Shown here piece by piece: positions 5,664 through 58,973 of a DNA stretch of 64,000 bases (positions are counted from its first letter, which is position 1; every line of letters starts with the position of its first letter). Position numbers and translations under genes: made by a program. Source of the stretch: Octopus bimaculoides. Taxonomy: Eukaryota. Below the pieces are notes generated by a model, which had not been told where the DNA came from, ran no database searches, and saw only the letters and a program-made list of their open reading frames with translations. The DNA is taken from assembly GCF_001194135.2 (NCBI RefSeq), contig NC_068989.1:15612874-15676873 (forward strand), given 5' to 3'.

Positions 5664-6050
5664 ACATTGATTTCAAATTTTGGCGCAAGGTCAGCAATTT
5701 TTAGGGTGGGGTTAAGTCGGTTACACTTGCCCAAGGGGCCACGCAGTGCGACTGGACTCAGATCCATGCGGTTGGTAAGCAAGCTATTTACCACACAACC
5801 ATGCCTGTATGATATGTGTGTGTGTGTGCGTGTGTGTGTTTGAGTGTGTGTGTGAGTGTGTGCGTATCTTTTGTTAGCACCTGCTACCACCGCTTGGCAG
5901 CCGGTTGTGGTGTGTTTGCGTCCTCGTAAAATAGCGATTCAGCAAAAGAGAACGAACAAATAAGTACGAGACTTCAGACAAACTGGGGTCGATATCATCA
6001 AAGTGATACTTCAGCATGGCTGCAGTCCAATGGGAAAATAAAAGATAAAA
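5664..6050. mobile_element. Composite: SINE C tail (-, 5664-5722), SINE B head (-, 5722-5808), (TG)n, SINE B tail (+, 5870-6050)
   Basis: Each block matches other copies in the window, but the B head and B tail are in opposite orientations. Confidence 0.75.
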
Positions 6051-6707
6051 CATGTATTATTTATAGAATTAAATGACGCTCGCTACTATTATTGCATATA
6101 TATCCGCCATGTACATTTTGGAAAACAGTCACATTTCTTCCAAAGTAATTTTTCAAAAGAAATCTCATTACATTAAAACAAACCGAATATACCTTCGTTG
6201 GGAATAATTTTAGGCCATTCATATTTCCGTCGTGGCAACGCNNNNNNNNNNNNNNNNNNNNNNNNNNNNNNNNNNNNNNNNNNNNNNNNNNNNNNNNNNN
6301 NNNNNNNNNNNNNNNNNNNNNNNNNNNNNNNNNNNNNNNNNNNNNNNNNNNNNNNNNNNNNNNNNNNNNNNNNNNNNNNNNNNNNNNNNNNNNNNNNNNN
6401 NNNNNNNNNNNNNNNNNNNNNNNNNNNNNNNNNNNNNNNNNNNNNNNNNNNNNNNNNNNNNNNNNNNNNNNNNNNNNNNNNNNNNNNNNNNNNNNNNNNN
6501 NNNNNNNNNNNNNNNNNNNNNNNNNNNNNNNNNNNNNNNNNNNNNNNNNNNNNNNNNNNNNNNNNNNNNNNNNNNNNNNNNNNNNNNNNNNNNNNNNNNN
6601 NNNNNNNNNNNNNNNNNNNNNNNNNGTGAGGTAGACAGGAAAAATAGAACTAACAGAACTAAAAATATGACCATAAGTATATTTTTATTAATATTTAGCA
6701 GCAGAAA

Positions 6708-6766
6708 GGCGGCGATATGGCAGAAACGTTAGCACGCCGGGCGAACTGCTTGGCGATATCCCGTCT
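6708..6766 (+). mobile_element. SINE family C head (nt 1-59), truncated by the LINE that follows
   Basis: GGCGGCGATATGGCAGAAACGTTAGCACGCCGGGCGAACTGCTTGGCGATATCCCGTCT versus consensus GGCGGCGAGCTGGCAGAAACGTTAGCACGCCGGGCGAAATGCTTAGCGGTATTTCGTCT. Confidence 0.92.
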
Positions 6767-7794
6767 CTGTGCGTTGTACGAGCTTATTTGTTTGTGCTGC
6801 GTTTGCAGCGGGTTTTGAGTTGTTGTGCCGTCTCTCGGTGGTACTGAGGGATGGCGAGTGAAGTCGTATACGTTCGGACCCCAGTGAAACAGAATTGTCC
6901 TCTTCAGAGGAGGAACTGGTCAGAGCTATCAAAAGGATGGACGAAAATTTAAAAAGAAAAAGCTTTGCAGAGGCAAAAGAGCTAAGAAAAGGTCAGTGAA
7001 TTTAATGAACTTAAAAGAGGACAGTAAAATGGCAGTAAGGGTGCGGAATGACGTAAGGCTTTCCTCACCTCAGGCTAAAATAGAGGAGATGCAATAGAAG
7101 ACGGTAGTATACAAGGCATACTCCGTAGAGAAAGGGAGAGTGGATCATGTGGAGGAAAGTGAGATTGATAAGGCACTAGCGGTGGTCTGGCCCGTTATCA
7201 TCTATCTGACCAGAGGAAGCAAATATGGAACTGCAATTGTGCATTATAGAACGGTAGATAAAGCGGTAGTCAATGCAGCCAAAATATTAAAAACTGATAA
7301 GACAGTCCTCTTACCATCCTATATGGGTAAGAGGATATCAAAAATAAAAGTTGAAGGGGTTCCACCAGAAATTGATGAGGCTTGGGTTGTGGGGGCCCTC
7401 TTCACAGAAAAGGAGAAGGAAGTCACGGTTTTTCAAGCTGAAGTGACAGATGGTACAGCATGGAAAGGAAAGATTATTGAAATAACTGTGCAGGCTAGTA
7501 TGGAGACGTTGGAAGGATTGGCGGAAAACCTGTAGATCGGTGATTTGAGCCTGAAAGTGTGAGTAGAGGGCAGGATTCTTCGCTGTTTTAAATGTGGCCA
7601 GAAAGGCCACATAAGAGCGAACTGCCCTCCACCACCCAAAATGGTAGAAGAGCGACAGCCAACACCACAAGAGAAGATACAAGAAGTAGAAAAATAAACT
7701 CCAATATTAGAAGATAGGGAATGGGAAACAGCCGGGAGGAGAAAAAAAAATAAAAAGAAAGTACTTGTGAACCCCAACCCACCCATTGCCCACC
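6767..7794 (+). mobile_element. L1/Tx1-type LINE copy 1: 5'UTR and disrupted ORF1, running into an assembly gap
   Basis: ORF1 remnant with KRKSFA and YLTRGSKYGT...LLPSYMGKRISKIKVEGVPP, homologous to ORF1 at 53591-54246, plus a gag-type zinc knuckle. Confidence 0.85.
6851..7794 (+). pseudogene. LINE ORF1 (gag-like) pseudogene with CCHC zinc knuckle
   Basis: ATG at 6851, then frameshifts and stops. CFKCGQKGHIRANC (CX2CX4HX4C) at 7584-7625 is in the same frame as the 7140-7535 ORF, beyond two in-frame stops. Confidence 0.85.
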
Positions 7795-8301
7795 NNNNNN
7801 NNNNNNNNNNNNNNNNNNNNNNNNNNNNNNNNNNNNNNNNNNNNNNNNNNNNNNNNNNNNNNNNNNNNNNNNNNNNNNNNNNNNNNNNNNNNNNNNNNNN
7901 NNNNNNNNNNNNNNNNNNNNNNNNNNNNNNNNNNNNNNNNNNNNNNNNNNNNNNNNNNNNNNNNNNNNNNNNNNNNNNNNNNNNNNNNNNNNNNNNNNNN
8001 NNNNNNNNNNNNNNNNNNNNNNNNNNNNNNNNNNNNNNNNNNNNNNNNNNNNNNNNNNNNNNNNNNNNNNNNNNNNNNNNNNNNNNNNNNNNNNNNNNNN
8101 NNNNNNNNNNNNNNNNNNNNNNNNNNNNNNNNNNNNNNNNNNNNNNNNNNNNNNNNNNNNNNNNNNNNNNNNNNNNNNNNNNNNNNNNNNNNNNNNNNNN
8201 NNNNNNNNNNNNNNNNNNNNNNNNNNNNNNNNNNNNNNNNNNNNNNNNNNNNNNNNNNNNNNNNNNNNNNNNNNNNNNNNNNNNNNNNNNNNNNNNNNNN
8301 N

Positions 8302-8572
8302 ATATATATATATATGTATATATATATATGTATGTGTGTGTATATGTTTGTGTGTGTGTTTGTCCTCCCACCCCCGACATCGCTTGGTAACCGATGCTGG
8401 TGCCTTTACGTCCCTGTAACTTAGCGGGTCGGCAAAAAGAACCGATATAATAATGAATACTAGGTTTACAAAGAATAAGTCCTGGGGTCGATTTGCTCGA
8501 CTAAAGGCGGTGCTCCAGCATGGCCGCAGTCAAATGACTGAAACAAATAAAAGAATAAAAGAATAAAAGAAT
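8302..8572 (+). mobile_element. SINE family B: internal microsatellite plus 3' half
   Basis: Near-consensus tail ...GTCCTGGGGTCGATTTGCTCGACTAAAGGCGGTGCTCCAGCATGGCCGCAGTCAAATGACTGAAAC followed by (AATAAAAG)n. Confidence 0.92.
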
Positions 8573-9010: not shown

Positions 9011-9192
9011 AAGCATTTGCCGCTACGTTCTGAGTTCATATTCAGCCGAGGTCGACTTTGCCTTTCATCCTTTCGGGGTCGATTAAATAAGTACCAGTTA
9101 CGCACTGGGAGTTGATATAATCGACTTAATCCGTTTGTCTGTCCTTGTTTGTCCCCTCTGTGTGTAGCCCCTTGTGGGTAGTAAAGAAATAA
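9011..9192 (+). mobile_element. SINE family C, tail variant C2, 5' truncated
   Basis: C core followed by the C2 tail TTGTCCCCTCTGTGTGTAGCCCCTTGTGGGTAGTAAAGAAATAA, as at 46070-46121. Confidence 0.9.
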
Positions 9193-9234: not shown

Positions 9235-10185
9235 TAGCCGGTGTGAGTGCCTCAACCGCTCCATCTGCTAGAAATAGAAACCAGGCTCTCCGAAATCACA
9301 CCGCAGCATCTTAAAAACAAGGAAGTATACGTTACATTTGCACAATATTATACAGAGACGGGATGGTCGTGGTAGGAACATCTTTTATCATAAATCTACT
9401 CTACCAGGGCTTATCCGAAGCTAAACAAGAACAGCTGGAGAGGTTGTGTCAGTGAACTAGCAGCAGCAACAGCAGCAGCAGTAGTAGTAGTCGCAGGAAT
9501 AGCAGCAGCAGTGGCAACAGCAGCAGTAACAGTGATTACTGTTTAGCCCAGTACTACCCAATGCAGCAGAACTATGATTAGATACCAATTTCCCCCCAAG
9601 CACAGTGCATCAAGGACTACCTTATGTAATGTGCCAAAATTTAGCTGGCATTTCTAGCTGATTGAGAGACCATATAGAGGTTCCATCGTTAAGCTTGCAA
9701 TGGCGTTGATGTTGTTGTTAGCCTTCTCCCCATCTATCAAAATTGCGATCAAATGCATTCTAGTCGTAACCATTCCACCATACTATTCAGGCAGAGTATA
9801 TCTGGGATTACATTATTCAATGTTTTTCCCACTACATTTGTCTTTGAGTGATATGGTGCAATTTGGGGGAGATTTGGCTGCTATGTCTTGCTGATCGACA
9901 TACTTCGTATAGGCTCTCTCGTTTGGTCGTTACTGTAGTAGTAATAGTAGGGTGGAATTTCGTGCTCGTAAGCAAAAGTCGTTGTAGATATCGTTCTATA
10001 GCCCAGGCTCAGTCAACCCCACTGAAACTATCCTTTCATTAACGGCTTCCTGGCCATGACCAGTCCATTTATATATTGGCCAGTATTAGCATCCAATATA
10101 TCCATTTTTTTTTCTATTTAAGACGGTGGGGTACGTTTTGGTAAAGATTTAGCTGCTATTTCTCGCAGGTCAAACGGGAGAGTAG
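9235..10185. mobile_element. Cluster of degenerate family F repeats (~190 bp, unclassified) separated by (CAG/TAG/GTA)n
   Basis: Recurrent GAGATTTGGCTGCTATTTCTAGCAGG-like motif at ~9260 (-), ~9870 and ~10145. Also seen at ~32580 and ~63770. Confidence 0.55.
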
Positions 10186-11599
10186 TTGAAGCAGTAGCAC
10201 CAGCAGTTGTCGTAGTAATAAAAGTATGGTGATGGTGGTGGTGGTAGTGATAGTTATACCATCGGTGGTACAACTTTCTTGATAAAAGAGGTGTTTCTAC
10301 CAGGCCTAATCAGAGAATCTCAAAAGTCCAAGATATTGAAATTAATTGTGGAGCATACCTTAGAGCATTGCAACTATTTTCGCCATAGTCATCCATGTTT
10401 TGACAAATTCATTAGAGAAGGGTGTCATACAACAACCCATCCTCACGAATCGATGTTGTAGTAAGTAGGATTAGAAAGTTAGTTTCGGCTTTTTCAACTT
10501 TTAAGACAGAGGGTGAGGCGGTCTCTGACATTTTCAGTTTTCGATGGTGACTCTGTTGGAACAGCAGTCTCACGGACGTTCTTCTTGTATTGCTAGTTCT
10601 GCTGCTGTCCCGTTCTGTGTTCTTTGACTTATTCAAGGCAGAAATTCCTCAAGTAGGGTTCGCATATCCACATATACCCAATTCAGGCAAAGGCGACTTT
10701 TTGAAAAAGTTTTTTGGCGCTTATCACCTACTTACACTTGCGAAAAAAATTGACTGTGAGCAGAAGGTTAAAGTTGCAACTCTTATCCTTTATTATATCT
10801 TTTGTGTGACGCCGTTCCCAAAATTGTAGCGTGTGCCTTTTTAAGTGGTAAGTGGTAGTCAAGATCAACTCCTTCCCCTCTTCCTCTATTGTCTTGAATA
10901 TTACACACACGACACCACTGAATTTTCCTCTTCCTACAAATAAGAAGTTGTGCCATTTGATCAGGGCTGCCTGCAATTATTCCTTAAGGGAAAAAAAGAC
11001 CTCTTGCGTTTTCGAAATGCTAGACAAACTTTTCTCGATCACAGATTTTCTGTTTAGTGTCCGTCTGTTTAAAACAACAGTAAAAGAATGGGGGATTGAA
11101 ATGTTTTCCCTATTTCTCTTTTCAAAATTCGCCATTATTTCTTTCGCTTTATGAAACGTGCTTGTGTCTATTATACACATTGGTGTTATTGTTATTTGTT
11201 TTGTTTTCTGTTAGAAATTCGTTATATAGATTTTTTTCTTTTCGAGAAAATGAATTTATTCTGCTTACAAATTGAATTTGTTTTCTTTTTCTACTGTTAA
11301 AAATAGTTGTCCCTTTCTTTTAAGAATTTTCCCATGTGGGATGTAATTTAAATGCTTTAATATGTCTTTATTTACGACTATTAAAGCAAAAGTATTTTTT
11401 TTCAAATTTAAGTAATTTTCCCCAAAGCAGAGAAGAATTTAATGCAGACCAATAAAATTTTCCCCTCCCTATTATGAAATGCCACACAAAAATATGTTTT
11501 CCCATGTAGTTTCACTTGATAAATACTCAAGTTATAAGAGAACGAAACCAAAGTGCGTTTGACCATCTCAAACACAGTAACAGCAACAACAAAATAATT

Positions 11600-12060: not shown

Positions 12061-14165
12061 TTTCTCTGTCTTTTATGCCTTGGTTCTACCTGTCATTCTT
12101 CATACAACATATCTTCATCTTTATTGATTTTATAGAAGCTCAGCTTTTATCTGAGCGACGTTCTGTTCATTATCACGGCTGCAATGTAACTCCAATTCCA
12201 CCCTGTGGGATTGGGCCTTTTCCGTGCTTTATGTTCTTTGTACCGTTTGGTTTCTCTCGTTCACTTCGTCTCATTCACTGTTTTCTCTTTTTTACAGTAA
12301 AGATGTATCAATATTCTCTAGCTTTCATCCATTCCCTATCGTTACAGGTGGTTGGGATAAAAAAAAAAGAAGATGGTGCTAGTGGCCTTCAGCATTGCTT
12401 GCTTCTGGAAATGAGAAAGAAGGCATTTCCTGATCTTCGATGGCGTAGCTATTAAGATTGATCCCAGGACCTGTTACTGTTGTCATTGGTTCTGTTGTTG
12501 TTTATTGCTCTCTTCCTTTGCCTTCTTAAGCTCCTGGCGGCAGAAATCACTTACTCTCAGAGATTTCACCGCGCCACTACTCTCATTGCTTTCACAGCAG
12601 GAAACAATTTTGAAATGTTTTTTTTTTCTCTTAATGGAAAAAAAAAACCAGACATGCAAATCCAGATTCTATCCGACCACTTATCATTTCTTGTTACCTT
12701 CGTCCATTTTGCGGAATAAAGTTGACAACGAACGTGGGATTAACTGTTTGCCACTAACAGTCACTCCTGTTGTGTGTTTGCCCATGTACTGTAATATTAG
12801 CCGTTAATTGGCGATGTCTGTTACTATTCCTGCTTGTTCTTTTGTCTCAATCTCAATTTCGGATAAATAACATACAATACCATATGTTCTGCTTTACCTA
12901 AGTTCTGAAAGCAATCAAACAATACCGTACAATCTGTTGCACTTAATGGATAAGATTCAGTCAGACAATATATTTTTCTCTGACGGGGGCTTTCTGTTGA
13001 TCTAAAATATCCTTACTGAATGCGTTATTTGCTAAGCTTAGAGTACAAAGTTGTATTTGTGTGCTCGTCATCAAAATTGTTCTCATATGCATTGAGAAGT
13101 AGAGAAACATTATATTTTTCGCTTCAAACAATGCTTTCGTCTTCAATTTTTTTGTACATTTTCTAATTGTTTTTTTTTTTCGTAATTGCTGTTCTGTTGC
13201 CAAACCTTTATTTTGAGCGTCATTTATCTCTGATATTTTGTGTTGAATGTCAACTAACAAAAATGAAAAAAGAAAGCAGAATTACTCTTCAAAAATGTTT
13301 GTTTTACGCCCACTTTGAACGAAAATAAATTAAACAACTTAGCAAAACACTCATTTTTTCCTTGAGTTAAATCGAACAAAGCAACACGGAAAAAGTCACT
13401 TATTTTTAGAAAAATTACAAAAAAATAATTGAAATAAGAGAAATACAATACAGAAGCAAACTACAAGTAAAATCAACAAGACGTGGAAGACATACATTGA
13501 GCAAAAAGCAATAAGACCAACAAAAGCAATAAGACCAACAAAAGCAATAATACACATTATTAAATAGATAAGATTATAAATTTTTCTTACTGTTTCTCTT
13601 AATCGACTGGCTCACCAATGTATTTAATAAACAAAAAATTCTGATCGTCTCTGATTGTTTCATCAATAAAATATAATAAATGGGACAATCTCAACCTTTC
13701 ATTTTTAGAGCATCATCAATAAATTTAATAAATGGGACATCCTCACACTTCCTTAATAAATATCTTAACATTAAATTTAATAAATGAGACATTCTCAAAC
13801 TTTCTTATTGACTCATCGATAGATTTAACAAATAAATTATTCTTCTCCGTGCTTCCTTGTTCTCTCAAATAAATGTAATAAATGGCATGTTCCCAACCTT
13901 TTTTCAGTGTCTCATCAATTTACTTAACAGATGAAATACTCTCAAATCCCACCCCTCCTTCCTTCCTTCCTTCGTAACTCATTAAGAAATTAAAATTATG
14001 AGACACTCTTATCCATCCTTATTGTCTCACAGAAATGTAATAAACGGCGTGTTCTCAACCTTCTGTAGTTGTCTCATCAATTCCTTCTTCTCCAAACTAT
14101 ATATTTTTAAAAAATGGGACAAACAACCTGCCCTTATCACGACATCAATATTTTTAATAAGCAAT

Positions 14166-14392
14166 GAAACGAGCTGGCAAAATCGTTAGCACGCTGGGAA
14201 AAATACTTAGTGGCATTTTGGCCCGTCTTTACGTTTTGAGTTCAATTTTCACTAAGGTCGACTTTGCCTTTCATCCTTTCGCAATCGATAAAATAAGTAC
14301 CAGTAGAGTACTGAGGTCGATAAAATCGATTGATCCACTTCCCTGAAATTGCTGGCTTTGTACCAAAATTTGAAACCAATATTTATATTATA
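14166..14392 (+). mobile_element. SINE family C, full length (tail variant C3)
   Basis: Head GAGCTGGCAAAATCGTTAGCAC, core GTCGACTTTGCCTTTCATCCTTTC, tail CCAAAATTTGAAACCAATATT. Confidence 0.9.
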
Positions 14393-14844
14393 TAGTAAAA
14401 AGTAATGGTTAAGGGTTACAAATGGCAAACAAACAATAATTACACTGGAATCAGCGTAATCGACATACCCACTTCCTCGGAATTGCTGGCCAAAATTTGA
14501 ATCTAATATCTTTAATAAATGAGACATTCTCACACATATTTCCTTATGGTCGCATCAATAAATTTGATAAATGGAACATTCTCAAAGTTTCTTATTGTCT
14601 CATCAATAAATTTGACAAAACACATTAATATGTTAAATAACTCAGTATTCTTACAATTATTTCCTTATTTGGTTATGAATCGATTTAATAGCTGAACCGT
14701 TTTTTTTTACACTTATTTCATTATTGTCTCATCAAAAATTTAATAAATATAGGCTTTCTCAACCTTCTTTAGTGTCTCGTAAATAGATTTAAGAAATGAG
14801 GGATTATCACATTCCTTTTTATTACATCAAATAGTGGGCGTGAT

Positions 14845-15030
14845 ACAGACACACACACACATATATATACATGACAGGCTTCCTCACAGCCTCCGTCTAC
14901 CAAATTTACGGACAAGGCCCTGATCGGCTCCGCGATAGAAGACACTTGCTCAAGATGCCACACTGTGGGACTAAAGCCGAAGCCATGTCATTTCAAACTC
15001 ATTTTCTTAGCTTCAGAGTCATGCCTGCAC
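14845..15030 (-). mobile_element. SINE family B, 5' half
   Basis: CCGTCTACCAAAT...AGAAGACACTTGCTCAAGATGCCACACTGTGGGACT. Confidence 0.8.
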
Positions 15031-15427
15031 CTATTAAATTTACTGATGAAACAAAAAGACCGTAAACATAAGAATGACCTATTCATTAAATGTGACATTC
15101 TCAACCTTATTTAGTGTCTGGTTAATAAATTCAGTAAACGTGAATTTCTCTCTCTTCCTTCGTATCTCCTGAATAAATTTAGAAACGAGACATTACCACA
15201 TTCTTTTTTATAACATCGATAGATAAAATGAATGGAACATTCTCAACCTTCATTAGTGTCTCATCAATAAATTCATTAAACTTGACTTTCTCATTCTTCT
15301 TTCGTACCTCCCGAATACATTTTGAAATGAGACATTACCCCGTTCCTATTTATCGCATCAATAGGTTTAATAAATGGGGACGTTCTCATGCCTCCGTTCT
15401 TATTGTTTCATCTTTAAATTTAATAGT

Positions 15428-15905
15428 TGCAGGTATAGCTACGAGGCTATACCACATGGTCTCGGGCTCAGTCCCACTCTGCAGCACCTTTGGCTAGTGT
15501 TTTCCATTATATCTCGGGGCCGATCAGTGTCTTGTCGGTCAATATGGACGACGGAAACTGTGAGGAGGCCCTCCATGTGAGTGTATATATATATAAATAT
15601 GGGGGGGGGGAGTGTGTGCGTATGTGCTTATGCATGTACGTGTGAATGTGTGTGTATCGACGTGTTTCTGTTTGTACCACGCCTGGCCTCTTGACAACCT
15701 GTGTTGGTTAGATTGATTTAGCTTCCCGCATCTTAGTTGTTCGACAACCCCGCTAAAAAAATAGCACACCTCAAAACCCCTCAAAAACGACAAAATAAGT
15801 ACCATTTCAAATTTTTAAAAATAAGTACTAGGATCGATTTGTTCAGCTAAACCCCTGAAAATGGTGCCTCAGCTTGACAGCAGTCCAAAGATAAAAGAAA
15901 ATAAA
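15428..15905 (+). mobile_element. SINE family B, full length, degenerate
   Basis: ACCACATGGTCTCGGGCTCAGTCCCACT head, internal (TA)/(TG) tract, degenerate tail. Confidence 0.75.
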
Positions 15906-16250
15906 CGTTTCATGCTGACTTTTTTTTTCTATACTATCTCATTAGTATAATAAAGTATTCTCGCCCTTATTGCTCCATAATGAATGAATCATGTTTCGTC
16001 GACTCCTATGTACTCTCCTCACACATGCTAACCATAGCCCACTTACGATAACCTTTGCTTGCTCCTGTATATTTACTCTATTTAGAATAATGTCATTTGA
16101 AGTGCATCATATGTTAAATTATTCTACTGTATATTAATTAATCGTATTGATAATCTATTGATTTTCATTATTCCAATAACGATATATTTCCCCTTACATT
16201 TATTTCCATACATTTGTAAATTAGCTACTTTGTACATTTGTACATAAATG

Positions 16251-16285
<35 letters not shown>

Positions 16286-16332
16286 CGCGTATGTCTATAC
16301 ACACATACATACATACACATGTACACATGTGG

Positions 16333-16550
16333 CTTTAAATTTTGGTACAAGGCTAACAAATTCGAGGAGCGTGAAAGTCGATAACATCGAACTCAGTATT
16401 TAACTGGTACTTATTCTATCGACCCCGAGTGTGATGAACAGCAAAGTCGACCACGGCGGAATTTGAACCGAGAGCCTAAAGAGGGATGAAATGCAACATT
16501 TGCCCGGAATTTAGTCCGTCTTGCTAACGGTTCTGCCAGCTCACCGTCTT
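16333..16550 (-). mobile_element. SINE family C, full length
   Basis: AAAGTCGACCACGGCGGAATTTGAAC...CTAACGGTTCTGCCAGCTCACCGTCTT. Confidence 0.88.
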
Positions 16551-17972
16551 TATATATATATATATNNNNNNNNNNNNNNNNNNNNNNNNNNNNNNNNNNN
16601 NNNNNNNNNNNNNNNNNNNNNNNNNNNNNNNNNNNNNNNNNNNNNNNNNNNNNNNNNNNNNNNNNNNNNNNNNNNNNNNNNNNNNNNNNNNNNNNNNNNN
16701 NNNNNNNNNNNNNNNNNNNNNNNNNNNNNNNNNNNNNNNNNNNNNNNNNNNNNNNNNNNNNNNNNNNNNNNNNNNNNNNNNNNNNNNNNNNNNNNNNNNN
16801 NNNNNNNNNNNNNNNNNNNNNNNNNNNNNNNNNNNNNNNNNNNNNNNNNNNNNNNNNNNNNNNNNNNNNNNNNNNNNNNNNNNNNNNNNNNNNNNNNNNN
16901 NNNNNNNNNNNNNNNNNNNNNNNNNNNNNNNNNNNNNNNNNNNNNNNNNNNNNNNNNNNNNNNNNNNNNNNNNNNNNNNNNNNNNNNNNNNNNNNNNNNN
17001 NNNNNNNNNNNNNNNNNNNNNNNNNNNNNNNNNNNNNNNNNNNNNNNNNNNNNNNNNNNNNNNNNNNNNNNNNNNNNNNNNNNNNNNNNNNNNNNNNNNN
17101 NNNNNNNNNNNNNNNNNNNNNNNNNNNNNNNNNNNNNNNNNNNNNNNNNNNNNNNNNNNNNNNNNNNNNNNNNNNNNNNNNNNNNNNNNNNNNNTATATA
17201 TATATATATATATATATATTACACGTGTATATGGGATGACCACTAGGTGGACATCCAATATGCTAGAAAGAGGTCATCAACGACCCAACCCATCGATAAC
17301 AGACGGGCGTCCACTATGCTCACGATCTTCAGAGCTCAGGGCTCCGCTGCGAAATCGTTTAAACCATTTTCGAGCTGACTACTCACAGGTCATTTTGTCA
17401 CCAAACGTTTCGTTCATTTCGCGAGTAGTTTCAGCTGCTCTACGTCCTTTTTTGAAGTTGAATAGCAAAATTGTTCGAATATCGCGCCATGACAGTTCTA
17501 TTTCAGATGATTGTTACAACAGTGAAAAAAATATCAATGTTAATTAATTGATGCATTTGGGTAAATCTGTGTCTGTATTATCAAAAAATTGCAAAAAGAT
17601 GTTTAGAAAAAAGTCAAAATCCTGCAAAAATCCGGTACATTTTTTTCAGGGTTCAAAACACTGATTACTTTTTACTCAGACTGATATATTACAATAGAAT
17701 AAAAGATGGATACGTCGTTGCTAATAGCACCAAAGCATTTATAATTAAGTTCATATCCGTATAACTAATTTATTAATTCTTTGATGCCATTAGCAACCGC
17801 CTGTCCATATTTTCTTTTATTGTACTTTCATTATCTCAAACGGTGTGTTTCAGTTAGCCAGCTCTTGTTTACCTGGATTACATCTGCAATCATTTGATGT
17901 CGGATTTTAAGTAATTGATTGGGTCTGAGCACTAATCTTTCTGTGTTTATTTGTTACGGACCATATATATAA

Positions 17973-18050
17973 GTGAGCTTGGCCTAGTGATTAAGATGCT
18001 TCATTCATGATCACGAGAGAGTGGTTTCAGTTCGCGGACAGGGTGCTCTG
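17973..18050 (+). mobile_element. tRNA-like SINE head (family D-like), degenerate
   Basis: TGGCCTAGTGATTAAG (A-box-like)...CATGATCACGAGAGAGTGGTTTCAG, similar to 56371-56415. Confidence 0.5.
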
Positions 18051-18580
18051 CGATCACTTCGACACCTGACGTGTGGTACACTGTGCACCTGTTCAAGCAA
18101 CGTCGATTTAATGTGTAACACAAACATTAGATCAAATATAAACAAATAATTCACGCAGGTTGCCAAATGTGTGCAGGCTGGATGTGGCAGTAACCAATGA
18201 AAGAAGCTTTTTTTTTGCAGGATCACCGAGATATGCAAAATGTGTGGATATCTTTTTGGCAAGAAACTTAAAGAATCGACTGGAATTTGAAAAGCAGGAA
18301 AGCTTAAGGGCTGTATATTGTGCGAAGATTTTTTTTCTTTTCTCGGATAGTTGTCTTGCAAAATTTGGGTTGCTAGATAAACGCTGCCGGGTTTTTGAAG
18401 AATTTGATTGCTAATCTAGGATAGATGTAGGGAATGAGACAAGTCGACGATTGCAAAATACTCCATTTCTCTACTGGTAACATCGATGAGGGATGTGTGA
18501 AAGCGTCTGAAGGAGAAAGGGGATTGAAGTCTCTAATGATGATGACATCAGGAAAAAGTGTACTGAGATATATGTCTTCA

Positions 18581-18681
18581 GTCGATAAAATAAGTACCAG
18601 TAGAGGACTGGCGTGGATGTAGTCTACTTACCCATCCTCGGAAATCGCCGGCCTTGTGCCAACATTTGAAATCAATATTAA
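18581..18681 (+). mobile_element. SINE family C, 3' fragment (C3 tail)
   Basis: GTCGATAAAATAAGTACCAGTAGAGGACTGG...GCCTTGTGCCAACATTTGAAATCAATATT. Confidence 0.85.
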
Positions 18682-18697
18682 AGATACATAAGCTTAT

Positions 18698-18798
18698 CTA
18701 TCCTCTTCCTCTTCTTCTTCCTCTTCTTCTTCTTCCTCTTCCTCTTCTTCCTCGTTCACTTCTTCCACTTCCTNNNNNNNNNNTCTTCTTCTTCTTCC

Positions 18799-18831
<33 letters not shown>

Positions 18832-19130
18832 TCCTCGTCCACTTCTTCCCCTTCCTCTTCTTCTTTTTCCTCTTCCATTTCTTCTTCTTCTTCATCTTCA
18901 TCTTCATTTCTTCCATTTCTTCTTCTTCCTCTTCCTCTTCTTCTTCCTCGTTCACTTCTTCCTCTTCCTCGTCCACTTCTTCCTCTTCCTCTTCTTCTTC
19001 CTCTTCCTCGTCCACTTCTTCCTCTTCTTTTTCCTCTTCCATTTCTTCTTCTTCATCTTCATTTCTTCCATTTCTTCTTCATCTTCTTCATTTCTTCCAA
19101 TTCTTCTTCCTCCTCTTCCTCTTCTTCATT
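18698..19130. repeat. (CTT)n/(CCT)n polypyrimidine low-complexity tract
   Basis: Direct inspection. Confidence 0.95.
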
Positions 19131-32437: not shown

Positions 32438-33662
32438 ATATATATATATATATTATCACTTAGCCGCAGCTTAATCCTGATCCACCTTATCTATGATAAA
32501 ATTGTGTTCATTTCGTCTTTGAGGGGAACCGATGGACTATATTATTTAAACTGTCCTTCCACATCTTTAGATTTGAGAGAGATTTGATTACTATTTCTTG
32601 CATACTGAGCGAATGCATATAGCAAACGCGAGAAACACTGTACCTGCGTTCACATCTGAGAACACCTAGTGACAAAGTCTTTAAAATATATATATATAAA
32701 AAGAACAGTTTAATTTATAAGCAGGAAGCAGTTATTTAATATGCGTTGTGTACCTATGAATATGTAAAATTAGAGTGTCATTTTTCACTACACATATGCA
32801 TTTGTAAGTTTCCCAAAGCGCTAAAAGGGTCTCCACCTCTGCTTGGATTGTTGATGTTACACAGAATAATATGTTTAATTAGTGTACTGCAGAAAGCGTG
32901 TTTATAAGTGACAAATAATTCCTATAATGATAGCATGTTGAAAACGGGAAACTAAATATTATTGGCAATGAACTTACGGTTTAAATTGACACTTGTGCTA
33001 GATACAATGTTTATTTAAGCCCACTTTGAATGAATGACTGCAGTGCAGAGTTATGTAATAATAAATAGTATAAATGGAAAACCAATAGAGGCATTAATGG
33101 AAAATTGTTCTCGCATGCACGTTTCAGAACATTACATGGAATGTAGAATTTTAAATGTTAAACAATCACTGAAATGTAAACTTACTTGGTAGAGTTGATA
33201 GCATAATTTCGGGATGGTAAAGAAGGTAAATATTTACAGCTGACCTCTAAGGAAAATACTCTGTAAATATAGTGATGTAGTCGGAGATTAAATCGCCTGT
33301 TTTCTAGTAGAAAGGAAAGAGCGATAAATCCCCGTCAGTCTGTTATTCATTCGAAGAAACCATTATTCACCCACCCCTGTTTGTGAACAGATACATAATG
33401 AATTGGACAATTTCCAAAGATTTGGTAGAGTCACTCTAGTTGCGCAAATCCCGTTGACTGAATAAACACTAAGTTATATATATGCAAAGAAATATTGCCA
33501 CTGTAATTTTGTGTTCGATCCCAGCCGTGAAACGTTTGGAATGTGTCGTTTATCATAACCTCAGTCTGACCAAAGTTTTGCGACTGAAATGTATTAGACA
33601 GACACTGAAAGTATTTACACATAGTTCTACTACTTAAACGAAGGTATTATTAAAAGCCCAAG

Positions 33663-33784
33663 TAAGGCTGTGAACTGGCAGAACCGTTAGCGCGCTGGAC
33701 AAAATGCTTAGCGGTATTTCGCCCGTTGCTACGTTCTGAATTCAAATTCCGCTGAGGTCGACTTTGCCTTTCACCCTTTCGGGG
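33663..33784 (+). mobile_element. SINE family C, 3' truncated
   Basis: Head through CCTTTCGGGG, then joined to non-SINE sequence. Confidence 0.9.
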
Positions 33785-33914
33785 AGTCAAGTCACTATAC
33801 TGAAGAAACATTCAATCATTTTCATCTCGGTGACCCTTCGTTATAACCTGAAAATGCAATTTTCTGCTATGGTAACTCCTCGAAAATTTTCATGGTTTAA
33901 TATTAATATCACGG

Positions 33915-34134
33915 AAGGCGGGAAGCTAGCAGAATTGTTAGCACACCGGGCCAAATGCTTAGCGATATTTCGTCTGTCTTTACGTTCTGAGTTCAAATTC
34001 CGCCGAGGTCGACTTTGCCTTTCAACCTTTCGGGGTCGATAAATTAAGTACCAGTTGTGTACTGGCGTCGATCTAATCGACTGGCCCCTCCCCCAAAATT
34101 GCAGGCCTTGTGCCTACAGTAGAAATGATTATTA
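33915..34134 (+). mobile_element. SINE family C, full length (C1 tail)
   Basis: Near consensus, ending GCCTACAGTAGAAATGATTATTA. Confidence 0.95.
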
Positions 34135-35236
34135 AAAGCCGAGGTTAATTATGTGGGTCACACACTGAATGGTGAAGATTTCAAGTCTTTAAAAAACAGA
34201 ATCAGAGCTGTTGAAAATATGAGACACTACAAATTAAAAATGAAATTTAGGCATCCTTACTTATATACCAAAATTTATCCATAGTGAATCAAAAGCATTA
34301 GTTAAGTCAATGTAGAAAAGGAACAGGAGTGTAACATGGTGGGGGGGAGAAGTATGTTTTCGAAATTAAGCTATACTTGCATCAACCGCAGTACTTAAAT
34401 ACATTGTTAACACATATAAGGCTTTATATTCTTAAGAAAGATTTGAGTGCTTCGCATGTTTAGGAAGTTGTGCTGCTGAGCCAGCTAGAACAGCTAGGCC
34501 ATTTGAACAGCTTTAAGTCCGGATCAAAAGAGAAATATAATTAAAAGTATTTGGCAGTGAATGCTTCCAAAAACTGATATATGATGGAGTATCTAAACGA
34601 TTACTCAGCATAGAACTGGTGTCCAAATCTCCCTCAGCTCACAGCCAAGTTGAAGAATACATGGGAAAAGGTAGTCACTATTATGTCTCTTGGGCTGTTT
34701 AACAGTACAACCTGGCATTTTGAAATGCCTTCAGAAGCATCAGTTACAAGCATTCAGGCCAGGTAAATTGTTATGGATACTGCTGCCTTCTCTCATGAAT
34801 GTAAAATAAAGAAAATCTCCTTTATTATCATTAACTGGATTAACCATTAAGCAAAATAAGCATGTGCTTAGAGTATCAAAGGAAGGAGGGGGCATCGAAG
34901 AAATGGTAAATGCTAAAGTAGTATTTAAATGGTTTATATGATCGGAAATTTAATTTCGAAGTGTTCATGATCCCATAGTGGGGATCTAATCAAAGGCAAT
35001 GCAATAATAATAAAAAAAACAAAAAATTAGGAGAAAACTTTTTAAACATAAATAAGCAGGAAATATACAAAAGTAAACCTTATTTTCCATCTTACTGTTA
35101 GTTTTGCTTCATTCTGAAAAAAATATTGTTTTATGCTTTATTGTTGTTTTATTTTGAGTTGCATACATATGGAGGGTACCAAAATCTTTTAAGTGCTTTA
35201 TGGGCCTAAATCCAGCCTTGTTTGTCATAGACTAAT

Positions 35237-35766
35237 TAATAGTTTCAAATTTTGGCATAAGTCCAGTAACTTTAGTGGGGAGGTGTTTAATCGATTCCGT
35301 CGGCCCCAGCGCTCGACTGGTAAGAGCATTTTATCGACCTCGAAAGGATGAAAGGCAAAGTCGACCTCGGCAGAATTTTAACGCAGAACGTAAAGACGGA
35401 TGAAATGCTGCTAAGCATTTTGTCTGGCGTCTTAACGATTCTGCCAGATCACTAATTTGGGCTCTAATTCTTTATACTCTAGGAACAAGGGCTGAAATTT
35501 CGGGCAGGGAACTAGTCAATTACATCGAGCCCTGTACTCAACTAGTACCTATTTTATCAACTAGTACCCCAGAAGGATGGATGTGCAAAATCGAACTCGA
35601 CGGAATTTGAATTCAAGATGTAAAGACGGACAAAATGTTTCGAAGCATTTCATCCGGCATACTAACGATTCTGCCAGCTCACCCAAAACAATGATTTTTA
35701 CGTTATTTAGGGCACATTTTAAGTCGGTGAGCTAGCAGAATCGTTAGTACGCCGGACAAAATGCTT
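35237..35766. mobile_element. SINE C cluster: two minus copies (35237-35452, 35466-35683) and a plus-strand head fragment (35720-35766)
   Basis: Cores and heads match the consensus. Confidence 0.88.
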
Positions 35767-44624: not shown

Positions 44625-44797
44625 GAACCATTTTTGAAATATTTAACATTTATGAAGGTTAACTGGAAGTGTCTCGTGTTTCTGGACAAATGCATCATTG
44701 TTACCAAATTTTTTAGTAATAGAAAGATTGTCATTCAAAATAAAGATTCAAGTATAGTTTCATTGTTACTGGTACTGCATCAATATCATCATCATCA

Positions 44798-44832
<35 letters not shown>

Positions 44833-44928
44833 GACGGATCCGTCTATCGGCCGAGTCTGTAGTTATGATTGTCCCGCCGCCCTCTTTCAATCACGCACCA
44901 AGGCAGTTTTCCTTTGCCTTCCGTTACC

Positions 44929-45070
44929 GGCATTTTGTCTGTCTCTACGTTCTGGGTTCAAATTCCACCGAGGTCAACCTTGCCTTTCATCCTTTCAGGG
45001 TCGATAAAATAAGTACCAGTTGAGTACTGAAGTCGATGTAATCGACTTATTGCCATCCCCGAAATGGCTG
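44929..45070 (+). mobile_element. SINE family C, 5' truncated
   Basis: B box and core near consensus. Confidence 0.88.
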
Positions 45071-45163
45071 TTCATACTTCAAATTCCACTGTTATAGCAT
45101 TTTTGTTTCCTGTATAGTTTTGTAGAGAATAAACAATATATATTTTATTTATTGAATTGAAAA

Positions 45164-45295
45164 TCAAGTCACTGTATTAAAGTGAATAAAAAATTGTACA
45201 TCTTATACATGGAAATTGGAGTCAGGTCACTATATTAAATTGAATAAAAATTGTATATTCTATGTATGGAAATTTGAGTCAAGTCACTATATTGA
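45164..45295. repeat. ~57-58-bp tandem repeat, ~2.3 units
   Basis: Units start at 45164, 45222 and 45279 (TCA(A/G)GTCACT(A/G)TATT...). Confidence 0.85.
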
Positions 45296-45406
45296 AGAAA
45301 CATTCAATCATTTTCATATCGGTGACCCTTCGTTATAACCCGAAAATGCAATTTTCTGCTATGGTAACTCCTCGAAAATTTTCATAGTTTAATATTAATA
45401 TCACGG

Positions 45407-45829
45407 AAAGCAGGAAGCTAGCAGAATTGTTAGCACGCCGGGCAAAATGCTTAGCAGTATTTCGTCTGTCTTTACGTTCTGAGTTCAAATTCCGCCGAGG
45501 TCGACTTTGCCTTTCATCCTTTCGGGGTCGATAAATTAAATACCAGTTGCATACTGGGGTCGATGCAATAGACTTGCTCCCTCCCCAAAATTTTCGGGCC
45601 TTGTACCTAGAGTAGAAAAGAATCGTTAGCACGCCGGGCAAAATGCTTAGCGGCATTTCGTCCGTCTTTAGGTTCGGAGTTCAGATTCCGCCAATGTCGC
45701 TATAGCCTTTGATCCTTTCGCGACCAATTAAATAAGTTGGATGCTGGGATCGATGCTGGGATCGATGCAATATACTTTTCTTCTCCCTCACAATTGCTGC
45801 CCTGGTGCCAAAATTTGAAGCCAATATTA
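45407..45829 (+). mobile_element. Two SINE C copies fused head to tail (45407-45620; 45619-45829, starting at head nt ~15-17)
   Basis: ...CCTAGAGTAGAAA-AGAA-TCGTTAGCACGCCGGG. Confidence 0.92.
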
Positions 45830-45889
45830 CTGACACTAAATTAGAATTCTACACTGCTGATTTAACAGTTAATGGAACATATAGCGACA

Positions 45890-46121
45890 AGGTGGCTAGC
45901 TGGCACAAACGTTAGCACGCCGGGCGAAATGCTTAGCGGTATTTCGTCTGCGCTACGTTCTGAGTTCAAATTCCACCGAGGTCGACTTTGCATTTCATCC
46001 TTTCGGAGTCGATAAATCAAGTACCAGTTACGCACTGGGGTCAATGTAATCGACTTAATCCGTTTGTCTGTGCTTGTTTGTCCCCTCTGTGTGTAGCCCC
46101 TTGTGGGCAATAAAGAAATAA
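45890..46121 (+). mobile_element. SINE C2, full length, with a 16-bp target site duplication
   Basis: GGAACATATAGCGACA at 45874-45889 and 46122-46137. Confidence 0.95.
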
Positions 46122-46159
46122 GGAACATATAGCGACATTGTGCCTAAAGTAGAAAAATA

Positions 46160-52355: not shown

Positions 52356-53590
52356 ATGGTTCTGCCTGGGATGGCACATGCCTGTGCCTCCCGGCTATAC
52401 CATTCGCGACATGCGCCAGCCTCTTTGCTAAAACCTTGGCCAAACTCTTCACTTCTGCGTTTAACAGAGTGATGGGCCTGAAATGATCTGAAACGTCCCC
52501 CTTGTCCGGGTCCTTTCTGATCAGCGTCACCACTCCCCGGCGCACAGATCTGGGGATAAACCCATTCTGTTGCCAGTTCGCGTACACGCTAGCCAGTAGG
52601 TACCCGAACAAGTCTGGCATACATTTATATAGCTCGTAAGGAAGACCATGAAGTCCCAGCGACTTATCCGCTTTACAGACAGTCATAGCCTCCGTCACCT
52701 CCACAGGCGTGATCGGCCCTCTCGCAATCCTCCGCATCCGACCCCGAGAGGCGTGGTGGCCCGGCAAGAAAATCCTTGAGGACTTCCCTACCATCAGGAC
52801 CGCCATCACCCCGAGCAGCTGGGTGAAGTACTCTCGAAAGGCCTCACACATTTCCTCGGGTTCGTTTACCAAGACACCATTTTGGTTCGTCATAGACTGA
52901 ATAGTGGAACTGTTTCCTTGTCGAGCTTCCACCACTCGGGCCCACCCAGCGGCCTTGATTCCTTCACTTCCCATCGCACGTAACTTAGCTCTGGTAATAC
53001 TTCCCATGTGTTGGGTTTCAAGATACTGGTTCAACTCCAGTCTCTTTACCTTCACTTGGTCCGCATTACCGAACCTCAAAGCTTCTTCTAGTTCTTTAAC
53101 TATACCATCTCTTATTCTACGTCCCTTCTTAGCTAAACTTATGCTAAACCTAATAGACTCATATTTTATGGCGTTTTGTGGGGTGTACCACCATTTATTA
53201 TTAATGATGGTACCTGTCTATGCCCTCTGAATTGATTTCTTGATCTGCTTTCTGTAGTCCTCAATCACCAAAATGGACGTATTGAGTTTCCAGTAGCCAG
53301 ATCCCTGTCTATGTAACTTATCTACTGTCAACTTACAGGTAACCACCTTGTGATCACTGTAGCTGACTAGGTGAAATTGTGGACACTTAGCTATGCACGT
53401 ATCTGTTTTACTAATTAAAACCCTATCTATATATGTTCTGGAAGACCCGTCACTATTTAACCACGTCCACTATGGAGTGTTCGGATGTTCCAACCTATAT
53501 GGATCTGCCAGTTGAAAGTGACTTAGCAGATCCCGAAAGTCAGGGTTACATTTTCCATTCATGTTCGAGCCAACACAATCTGTGCGTGCG
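52356..53590 (-). pseudogene. LINE ORF2 remnant (AP endonuclease C-half, linker, RT domains 0-2)
   Basis: In-frame stops and frameshifts. The 52342-53079 ORF is part of it. Confidence 0.92.
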
Positions 53591-54246
53591 TCACAAATTG
53601 TTTCCTTCCAGGACTGCAGCCATCAAGCACATAAGGTTTACTCCGGGTGGAACTCTAGGTATTCTAACCTTAGATGTCCTCATTCCCATGTAAATTGGGA
53701 TCAATATCGTGTCTTCTGACTCTAATGATTTTACAGAGTGTTGTTGTGCCGTTTCTACGTTCTTCTTGAACTTCACCTCCATGGTTCCAAACTTCTTCCC
53801 TCTGGCTAGGTATGTAATGTCCTGCCAGATGGGTTTTAAACATTTTTCAGTTTTCTGCTCACATATCTTGTCAAGTTTTCGAGCTTTTAAGCAGAATGTC
53901 TTAAAAATAATAATTTTCCCTTTTTCTGCTGTTAATTGTTCTTCTGGTATTTCCACTTTTACCATTCCATTTCGTACTGTTACCATTTCCTTGTATTTTA
54001 ATAATTCCTTTTTGTCAGTTGACAGCTGTTGCATTCCACTACCAGCTGCTGACGCAAAACTTTTTCTTTTTTCATTTTGAATGGTCTTTGCTTCTATATT
54101 TCTTTTGGTACCCGTAACTTTTGGCAATGCAGGGAATTCACTTTCCGAAACATCAGAAATGTTATCAAAAATTAAACTTTCTATCTTCCTCGCTTCCCGC
54201 TCGGTCGATGAATCTTCACCCGACGAAGACACACTTTTCGGCATCT
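53591..54246 (-). pseudogene. LINE ORF1 N-terminal half (MPKSVSSSGED...), truncated by deletion
   Basis: KRKSFA and ITYLARGKKFGT...LIPIYMGMRTSKVRIPRVPP align with copy 1 ORF1. Confidence 0.88.
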
Positions 54247-54422
54247 TGCCGGCAATTAATGTTTTCCCCCACACGGGAAAACCACAGATAGCCTTCGAAA
54301 GAAAACTATAATACAACTTTTAAATAATAAGTCCAACAATAAGCACAACAAGAGGTATAACGATATAACAATTAACAGAAACTTATTTTACGAACACACT
54401 CCAACAATAAATTTTCAATCAC

Positions 54423-54485
54423 AGACAGACGAAATACCGCTAAGCATTTCGCCCGGCGTGCTAACGTTTCTGCCAGCTCGCTGCC
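54423..54485 (-). mobile_element. SINE family C head (nt 1-63), truncated by LINE copy 2
   Basis: GGCAGCGAGCTGGCAGAAACGTTAGCACGCCGGGCGAAATGCTTAGCGGTATTTCGTCTGTCT, essentially consensus. Confidence 0.95.
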
Positions 54486-57897: not shown

Positions 57898-58305
57898 GTT
57901 TTCTACTCTAGGTACACGGACCAAAATTTTTGGGGAAGGGGCCTGTCGATTAGATCAGCTACAGTACGCAACTGGTACCTAAAGGGTGAAAGGCAAAGTC
58001 GACCTCGGCGGAATTTGAACTCAGAACGTAAAGACAGGTGAAATACTTCGCAGTATTTGCCCGGCGTGCTAACGATTCTGACAGCTCACCACCTTAATAA
58101 TAATCCTTTCTACTACAGGAACAAGGCCTTGAAAATTTTAGGGAAGGGGACTAGTCGATTATATCGTCCCCAGTGTTTCACTGGTATTTAATTTATCAAC
58201 CCCTGAAAGGATGAAAGGCAAAATCGACCTCGGGGAAATTTGAACTTGAACGTAAAGGTGGACGAAATATTGCGAAGAATTTCGATTCTGCCAGTTCACA
58301 GCGTT
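57898..58305 (-). mobile_element. Two SINE C copies directly head to tail (57898-58095; 58096-58305)
   Basis: Minus-strand junction GTAGAAAGGATTATTATT|AAGGTGGTGAGCTG. Confidence 0.9.
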
Positions 58306-58973
58306 AAAGAGAGAAGTATATANNNNNNNNNNNNNNNNNNNNNNNNNNNNNNNNNNNNNNNNNNNNNNNNNNNNNNNNNNNNNNNNNNNNNNNNNNNNNN
58401 NNNNNNNNNNNNNNNNNNNNNNNNNNNNNNNNNNNNNNNNNNNNNNNNNNNNNNNNNNNNNNNNNNNNNNNNNNNNNNNNNNNNNNNNNNNNNNNNNNNN
58501 NNNNNNNNNNNNNNNNNNNNNNNNNNNNNNNNNNNNNNNNNNNNNNNNNNNNNNNNNNNNNNNNNNNNNNNNNNNNNNNNNNNNNNNNNNNNNNNNNNNN
58601 NNNNNNNNNNNNNNNNNNNNNNNNNNNNNNNNNNNNNNNNNNNNNNNNNNNNNNNNNNNNNNNNNNNNNNNNNNNNNNNNNNNNNNNNNNNNNNNNNNNN
58701 NNNNNNNNNNNNNNNNNNNNNNNNNNNNNNNNNNNNNNNNNNNNNNNNNNNNNNNNNNNNNNNNNNNNNNNNNNNNNNNNNNNNNNNNNNNNNNNNNNNN
58801 NNNNNNNNNNNNNNNNNNNNNNNNNNNNNNNNNNNNNNNNNNNNNNNNNNNNNNNNNNNNNNNNNNNNNNNNNNNNNNNNNNNNNNNNNNNNNNNNNNNN
58901 NNNNNNNNNNNNNNNNNNNNNNNNNNNNNNNNNNNNNNNNNNNNNNNNNNNNNNNNNNNNNNNNNNNNNNNNN

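Follow-up and report, generated by a model that had tools for sequence, protein, structure and literature searches.

Two LINEs in a 64,000-nucleotide stretch of the Octopus bimaculoides genome (the window, that is, the whole stretch of DNA that was analysed) begin with the same ~60-nt head of one SINE. The question raised by this locus is whether the LINEs inserted into copies of the SINE or carry its head as a part of themselves. The SINE, here called SINE C, is represented by a full-length a-type reference copy at 45889–46125 of the forward strand, which is flanked by a 16-bp target-site duplication (TSD; GGAACATATAGCGACA) and has a 3' tail that matches LINE tails. Its nucleotides are numbered from G1, the first G of GGCGGCGAG. 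Box A is positioned at nt ~8–18 and box B at nt ~71–83; the box-like motifs are legible in the sequence, and ARAGORN and Rfam give no tRNA. Ordinary SINE C copies are dispersed and have TSDs of 13–18 bp, and 21 of 22 copies are preceded by AA. A 27-mer from the head occurs four times in the window, with zero occurrences expected.

The head of LINE copy 1 comprises SINE C nt 1–59 (6708–6766, forward strand), is 85% identical to the reference, and is preceded by AAA, as in ordinary SINE copies. It ends with CCCGTCT at 6766, and the LINE opens with CTGTGCG at 6767. This LINE, the only family 1 copy (6767–7794), contains a 5'UTR starting from CTGTG and a decayed ORF1 with an RRM-like region and a CCHC knuckle, which extends up to an assembly gap at 7795. 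Copy 1 is located on a 1.17-kb contig (6626–7794) with gaps on both sides, and its placement among its neighbours is therefore given by scaffolding alone; the window contains ten such gaps. Another SINE-like repeat (8360–8545) lies between microsatellites just past the gap that ends copy 1. Copy 2 is on the reverse strand, and its head of SINE C nt 1–61 (54425–54485), 98% identical to the reference, ends with CGTCTGT, after which the LINE opens with CTGTGAT at 54424. The LINE of family 2 (52357–54424) is composed of a 180-nt 5'UTR, which also starts from CTGTG, ORF1 (54244–53591), the C-terminus of APE, a linker, and the N-terminus of RT, whereas the C-terminus of ORF1 and the N-terminus of APE were removed by an internal deletion of ~970 bp and the 3' part is missing. 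Both junctions are blunt joins, and microhomology was rejected as their cause; the best match to CTGTG within the SINE is near its tail and not at nt 60.

The two LINE bodies are very divergent. Their ORF1 sequences are 30% identical, and their 5'UTRs align neither to each other nor to SINE C past nt ~61. The flanks of the two loci differ, and the copies are therefore not a duplication. In both copies the SINE is broken between box A and box B. A sequence-only reading of the window had described the sense-oriented heads, the position of the break, the similarity of the heads to the SINE consensus, and the divergence of the LINE bodies, and had concluded that the loci are not duplicates and that the head was not inherited from the common ancestor of the LINE families. 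All of these claims are borne out. The reverse scenario, in which both families inherited the head from their common ancestor and the SINE acquired it from a LINE, is very improbable. LINE-derived SINE heads exist (LP-SINEs, PMC4758252), but it is difficult to reconcile such an origin with heads that are 85–98% like the young SINE on LINEs that have diverged to the extent described above. Furthermore, the tRNA-like region of the SINE, with box B, continues past the break-point at which the LINEs begin, no SINE head is detectable on LINEs of Argonauta, and the Argonauta SINE has a body and tail in common with SINE C but a different head.

A protein search with ORF1 of copy 2 identified two Octopus vulgaris proteins, the loci of which (L001 and L002) are on different chromosomes. 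In L002, a head of SINE C nt 1–61 (9771–9835) is followed by a LINE from 9836. In L001, the head starts at nt 19 and extends from 9795 to 9837, with the tail of another SINE directly before it and the LINE from 9838. Both LINEs belong to family 2, their head-LINE junctions are identical, and the sequence continues with TACTGAAAA. The family 2 copies are 84–89% identical to one another, and the two complete family 2 heads have the GGCAGCGAG variant in common and no AA in front of them. The L001 locus also includes an intact LINE ORF1 of 371 amino acids (10001–11116, protein P0001), which carries the O. vulgaris annotation 'EPM2A-interacting 1-like' and is followed by a destroyed ORF2.

SINE C nt 59–61 is thus joined in sense to four of four LINE 5' ends, a small sample with three copies of family 2 and one of family 1: copies 1 and 2 of the window, L001, and L002. 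The SINE part always ends at nt 59–61, the LINE part always starts with CTGTG or TACTG, and the outer flanks are all different. These four fragments are the only ones with coding sequence of the clade that tblastn with full Argonauta LINE proteins found in 102 kb of Octopus DNA. By comparison, none of 22 SINE 5' ends lies behind such a 1–61 head (Fisher p = 7e-5, unrounded 6.7e-5), and the chance of a random 5' junction falling within a 5-nt window of a sense head is ~1e-3 per event. The link between head and LINE is real, and the earlier claim of a non-random association is confirmed. The 3' parts of all four head-bearing copies were lost to deletions, rearrangement, or a gap, and no TSD was found for any of them. 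Protein searches yielded, beyond the two O. vulgaris ORF1 hits, only Argonauta and unplaced contigs. No further copies turned up in collections of metagenomes, GTDB genomes, and viruses that were scanned with ORF1 profiles, a 21-mer from the ORF1 start, and SINE-head patterns.

The association could have arisen by an accident at the DNA level, in which a single LINE inserted into a SINE by chance, or recombined with one, and gene conversion or segmental duplication then spread the fused 5' end. SINEs constitute ~11.6% of the O. vulgaris genome (PMC13282606), and the three family 2 copies share their junction, both of which speak for such an event. Nevertheless, it is improbable: the four loci have different flanks and are on different chromosomes, and because the 5'UTRs of the two families cannot be aligned, two accidents in the same 3-nt window would be needed (~1e-6).

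The architecture of the LINE clade was derived from relatives in Argonauta hians (L003 and L004), in an unplaced NCBI assembly (L005), and in metagenome contigs (L006–L008). ORF1 is followed by APE, RVT_1, and zf-RVT domains, and the nearest solved structure is that of human L1 ORF2p (E 1.5e-41). The domains show an L1-like architecture, of which the Tx1 label is not a part; L1-Tx1 families are present in the repeat annotation of O. vulgaris (PMC13282606). The LINE 3' ends of the clade have the form CCCTTGTGG(C/T)(C/T)AATAAAGAAA, behind which Octopus-type elements usually have (ATT)n and those of Argonauta (TATC)n. Over its last 35–55 nt, SINE C matches these LINE 3' ends in Octopus, Argonauta, and the metagenome contigs. 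Because the 3' tail is common to both, the LINE clade is likely the partner of SINE C, as judged from the sequences.

The sequence-only reading had interpreted the heads as the remains of SINEs that were targeted by the LINEs. The LINE endonuclease would cut the DNA of the SINE C head, the LINE would enter in sense by target-primed reverse transcription, and the ~60 nt upstream of it would be the disrupted SINE. This explanation is possible but, in our assessment, somewhat doubtful. It accounts for the occurrence of the head at all four LINE 5' ends, in two deeply divergent families and with junctions within 3 nt, as well as for the heads beginning at SINE nt 1 behind different upstream flanks. 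Many families of the Tx1 clade target repeats, including other transposons (PMC4494074). The part of the earlier interpretation that stands is the non-random association with neither duplication nor an ancestral head behind it, whereas targeting itself has found no direct support.

If the LINEs had entered SINEs, their 3' ends should resume SINE C. A SINE remainder follows none of eight 3' ends of the clade, which belong to elements other than the four head-bearing copies (three in tandem in L002 at 6253–6940, one each in L007, L008, and L004, and two in L003). Instead, these ends run into (ATT)n or (TATC)n or are bare tails, and no (ATT)n-SINE junction was found in the sequences examined. This does not refute targeting, because none of the four head-bearing copies keeps its 3' end, yet the lack of any observed 3' junction at which the SINE resumes, and the adjacency of clade tails to microsatellites instead of SINE remainders, count against it. 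So do the family 2 heads without the usual AA. In addition, an insertion of a full SINE behind SINE nt 1–61 is found at 0 of 22 SINE starts, though the SINE uses the same tail as the LINEs. Head addition at the RNA level, which is considered below, is in line with the same observations, since the SINE is dispersed and no copy was seen to be split by an insertion with duplicated SINE sequence.

The three LINE 3' fragments in L002 are short and have tails of the ..TTGTGG..AATAAA type, with (ATT)n behind two of them; it appears that younger copies inserted into the microsatellite tails left by older ones. In Argonauta hians, the L003 locus contains a full-length LINE (12966–18876) with a well-defined 5' end and no detectable SINE head. 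The end is well defined because the element is flanked on both sides by a 179-bp direct duplication (12787–12965 and 18896–19074) that is 98.9% identical and includes (TATC)n. The duplication is either a very long TSD or the result of insertion into the microsatellite tail of a LINE; the element is positioned directly behind the tail of a different LINE, to which it is 65% identical. The existence of this headless relative favours an addition of the head to the Octopus LINEs at the RNA level. A weak similarity of the L004 5' end to the head was dismissed, as it did not rise above shuffled sequences (69 of 500 shuffles were as good).

A 5'-truncated SINE C remainder (9015–9192, forward strand), starting at nt ~48 or 61, follows the copy 1 head at a distance of 2.2 kb on the same strand. 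Its presence is in favour of targeting and against head addition at the RNA level. There is, however, no LINE tail ahead of the remainder and no TSD shared with the flank of the copy 1 head, and the interpretation of the two as one split SINE was dropped. Elsewhere in the window, an orphan SINE head ending at nt 45 (35722–35766) and a SINE remainder from nt ~46 (44925–45075) are 9.1 kb apart on the same strand; their pairing is probably due to chance (rough p ~0.1).

The SINE arrays in the O. vulgaris loci allow targeting to be formulated more specifically. Partial tandem arrays with the organization (1–232)(48–232)(48–...) are located at 7314–8053, 9437–9794, and 11308–11808 of L001 and at 5853–6252 and 14045–14766 of L002. 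In seven SINE arrays of these loci, the tail of one unit is joined precisely to nt 48 of the next (AAAGAAATA/GGTATTTCG), and all seven of these tail-nt 48 junctions are in O. vulgaris, with none in the window. The offset of 13 nt from nt 48 to nt 60 corresponds to the typical TSD size of these elements (13–18 bp), and a-type tails adjoin nt 48 in this way seven times. A bottom-strand nick at nt 47/48 and a top-strand nick at nt 59–61 would produce a TSD of 11–14 bp. According to this tentative model, which we regard as the less probable one, two old L1/Tx1-type lineages of Octopus would use their own partner SINE as a specific target, and the cut in its head would separate box A from box B at an inverted repeat that can form a hairpin. 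The L001 head is embedded in such an array, in agreement with targeting. For head addition at the RNA level this is a difficulty: the L001 head comes third in a row of SINE units whose arrangement recurs elsewhere, and insertion into an existing array explains this equally well. The staggered-cut model of the arrays is weakened by two observations. The boundary at nt ~46–48 also occurs next to an internal ORF2 fragment, without the tail of an element upstream, and the units of three arrays have private variants in common. Both fit an origin at the RNA level better, and a DNA nick-site model does not predict such a boundary beside non-tail sequence.

The ORF2 fragment is part of a chimera on the forward strand (44833–44925), in which 92 nt coding for the C-terminus of ORF2 lead directly, in the sense orientation, into SINE C at nt ~46. 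Its product is 82% identical to that of L007 ORF2 (E 3.5e-7), and (CAT)n(ATT)11 precedes it within the chimera region (44779–44925). Two further composites are each enclosed in a single TSD. The first (33644–34142, forward strand) consists of SINE nt 1 to ~120, a 130-nt leader, and a SINE from nt 1 to the tail, with one TSD of 13–16 bp around the whole, which suggests 5' extension together with template switching. A SINE with the 130-nt non-SINE leader occurs twice in the window, at 33644–34142 and 45270–45408. The second (57907–58322, reverse strand) is a head-to-tail dimer of complete SINEs joined by TTATTATTAA within one 18-bp TSD (TATATACTTCT[C/T]TCTTTA), and looks like the product of an end-to-end template jump. 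The composites in single TSDs and the ORF2/SINE chimera indicate that template switching, including that between LINE and SINE RNA, is common for this retrotransposition machinery.

The break-points follow the predicted structure of the SINE RNA. Two hairpins are predicted for nt 1–61 of the head (−27.8 kcal/mol, z −3.7), with stems formed by nt 9–14 and 21–26, extended by nt 5–7 and 28–30, and by nt 31–43 and 48–60, the latter being the 13-bp stem of hairpin 2. All four LINE-borne heads end at nt 59–61, at the 3' base of the predicted hairpin 2. The arrays restart at nt 48, where loop 2 gives way to the 3' arm of this hairpin, the restart of the ORF2 chimera at nt ~46 is in loop 2, and five junctions are within the predicted loop 1 (nt 14–19). 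The genomic copies do not add to the prediction: 87.7% of cells pair over 23 copies, no better than in column shuffles, and the hairpins are thus without covariation, which weakens an explanation based on RNA structure.

Taken as a whole, the evidence makes it somewhat more probable than otherwise that the head was added to the LINEs at the RNA level and was then inherited in family 2. Because SINE C borrowed its 3' tail from the clade of these LINEs, one reverse transcriptase likely acts on both LINE and SINE RNAs. The enzyme would copy the LINE RNA to its 5' end (CTGTG...) and then move onto SINE C RNA, entering it at nt 59–61, where the 3' side of hairpin 2 has its base, and copying on to nt 1. 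The natural acceptor would be a nuclease-resistant 5' fragment of the SINE RNA that ends at the base of the hairpin. In family 2, the chimera most likely became a part of the transcribed element and was inherited, whereas family 1 may have gained its head separately or through an exchange of 5' ends at the common CTGTG. The head, with box A and its two predicted hairpins, may act as a leader at the LINE 5' end or as a promoter. The partner relation indicated by the common tail, the directly visible template switching in the two composites and the ORF2/SINE fusion, the correspondence of break-points with the predicted RNA structure, and the eight clade LINE 3' ends that do not continue into the SINE all argue for this sequence of events. 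The GGCAGCGAG variant shared by the complete family 2 heads, which have no AA in front, and the identical junctions of L001 and L002 also count in its favour. The sequence-only reading had considered a head carried on the LINE as its own alternative, and this alternative is now favoured by the composites, the break-points at hairpins, the dispersed SINE, the microsatellite tails, and the precedent of crocodilian SINEU, with targeting still as its rival.

Several observations are not easily accommodated by head addition at the RNA level. The same 3-nt window of the SINE was used in two families with ORF1 identity of 30%, which needs a structural bias or a transfer between families. Since LINE but not SINE 5' ends are capped (4/4 against 0/22), simple random capping fails and inheritance must be assumed; inheritance would in turn presuppose LINE transcripts that begin at head nt 1. 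That no TSD was found for any of the four copies is a further weakness of the RNA-level reading.

The closest precedent is the Tx1-Mar families of crocodilians, the heads of which are derived from U1/U2 snRNA and are nearly identical to those of their partner SINEU elements; the recurrent 5' additions and partial duplications of SINEU were ascribed to template switching (Kojima 2015, PMC4494074). This precedent supports head addition at the RNA level. As in Tx1-Mar, the head of the partner SINE forms the extreme 5' end of more than one octopus LINE family (n = 3 in family 2 and n = 1 in family 1). In contrast to Tx1-Mar/SINEU, the octopus head consists of ~60 nt of a tRNA-like SINE with box A and box B instead of an snRNA, and is cut at a hairpin base. 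Moreover, the octopus partners are linked by a common 3' tail of 35–55 nt and not by a common target, the host is a cephalopod, and the LINE is known to be L1-like from its architecture.

Target-specific LINEs of the Tx1 clade, such as Tx1L in Tx1D, Keno in U2 genes, and Tx1-Mar in Mariner-N4_AMi, resemble the octopus copies in having a fixed repeat sequence at the 5' flank in one orientation, as seen in four of four copies here. They are defined by the second flank, at which the target is resumed after the LINE 3' end together with a TSD, and which is not observed in the octopus copies, as their 3' ends are lost. Unlike in these systems, the octopus partner SINE is dispersed, and the LINE tails of the clade adjoin microsatellites.

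In the U6-L1 chimeric retrocopies produced by template jumping of the LINE reverse transcriptase, as far as they are recounted in PMC4494074 (Buzdin 2002; Garcia-Perez 2007), a small Pol III RNA was likewise copied onto the 5' side of LINE cDNA up to the 5' end of the small RNA. According to the same account, the small RNA in U6-L1 is complete, the L1 part is variably 5'-truncated, and the chimeras are sporadic, whereas in octopus the SINE stops at nt 59–61, the LINE 5' end is always full, and the association is family-wide. A sporadic chimera of the U6-L1 type was rejected for the octopus copies on the grounds of the incomplete SINE part and the constant LINE start. The difference also bears on the proposed mechanism, since the acceptor was not the 3' end of a complete RNA, unlike in the U6-L1 chimeras. 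Modules common to the 5' ends of LINEs and SINEs are known from molluscs and trypanosomes (LP-SINEs and the Pr77 of ingi/L1Tc; PMC4758252). Like the octopus head, these modules of ~70 nt are shared by unrelated LINE families and SINEs and are suspected to be promoters. They are derived from LINEs and were taken up by SINEs, whereas the octopus module is derived from a tRNA-like SINE and was taken up by LINEs.

Template switching is a more likely source of the heads than deliberate insertion into SINEs. The presence of a partner-SINE head on LINE 5' ends is already known; what is new, if the head was added at the RNA level, is the tRNA-like SINE, the cephalopod host, and the structurally defined break-point. 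The map of break-points also provides a testable picture of the sites at which this reverse transcriptase halts and changes templates. If the LINE carries the head, module flow from SINE to LINE occurs outside crocodilians, and a short structured RNA with two hairpins and box A is a candidate for a reusable 5' leader. If, instead, the LINEs target the SINE, the partner SINE would be a new class of target for site-specific Tx1-like elements, and one parasite would, unusually, live on another. The LINEs would have a safe harbour in the most abundant repeat of the genome, at the cost of one inactivated SINE promoter per insertion. By either mechanism, the octopus elements are a clean case in which LINEs and the SINE that depends on them exchange not just 3' tails but also 5' modules, in a genome of which about a quarter consists of SINEs and LINEs.
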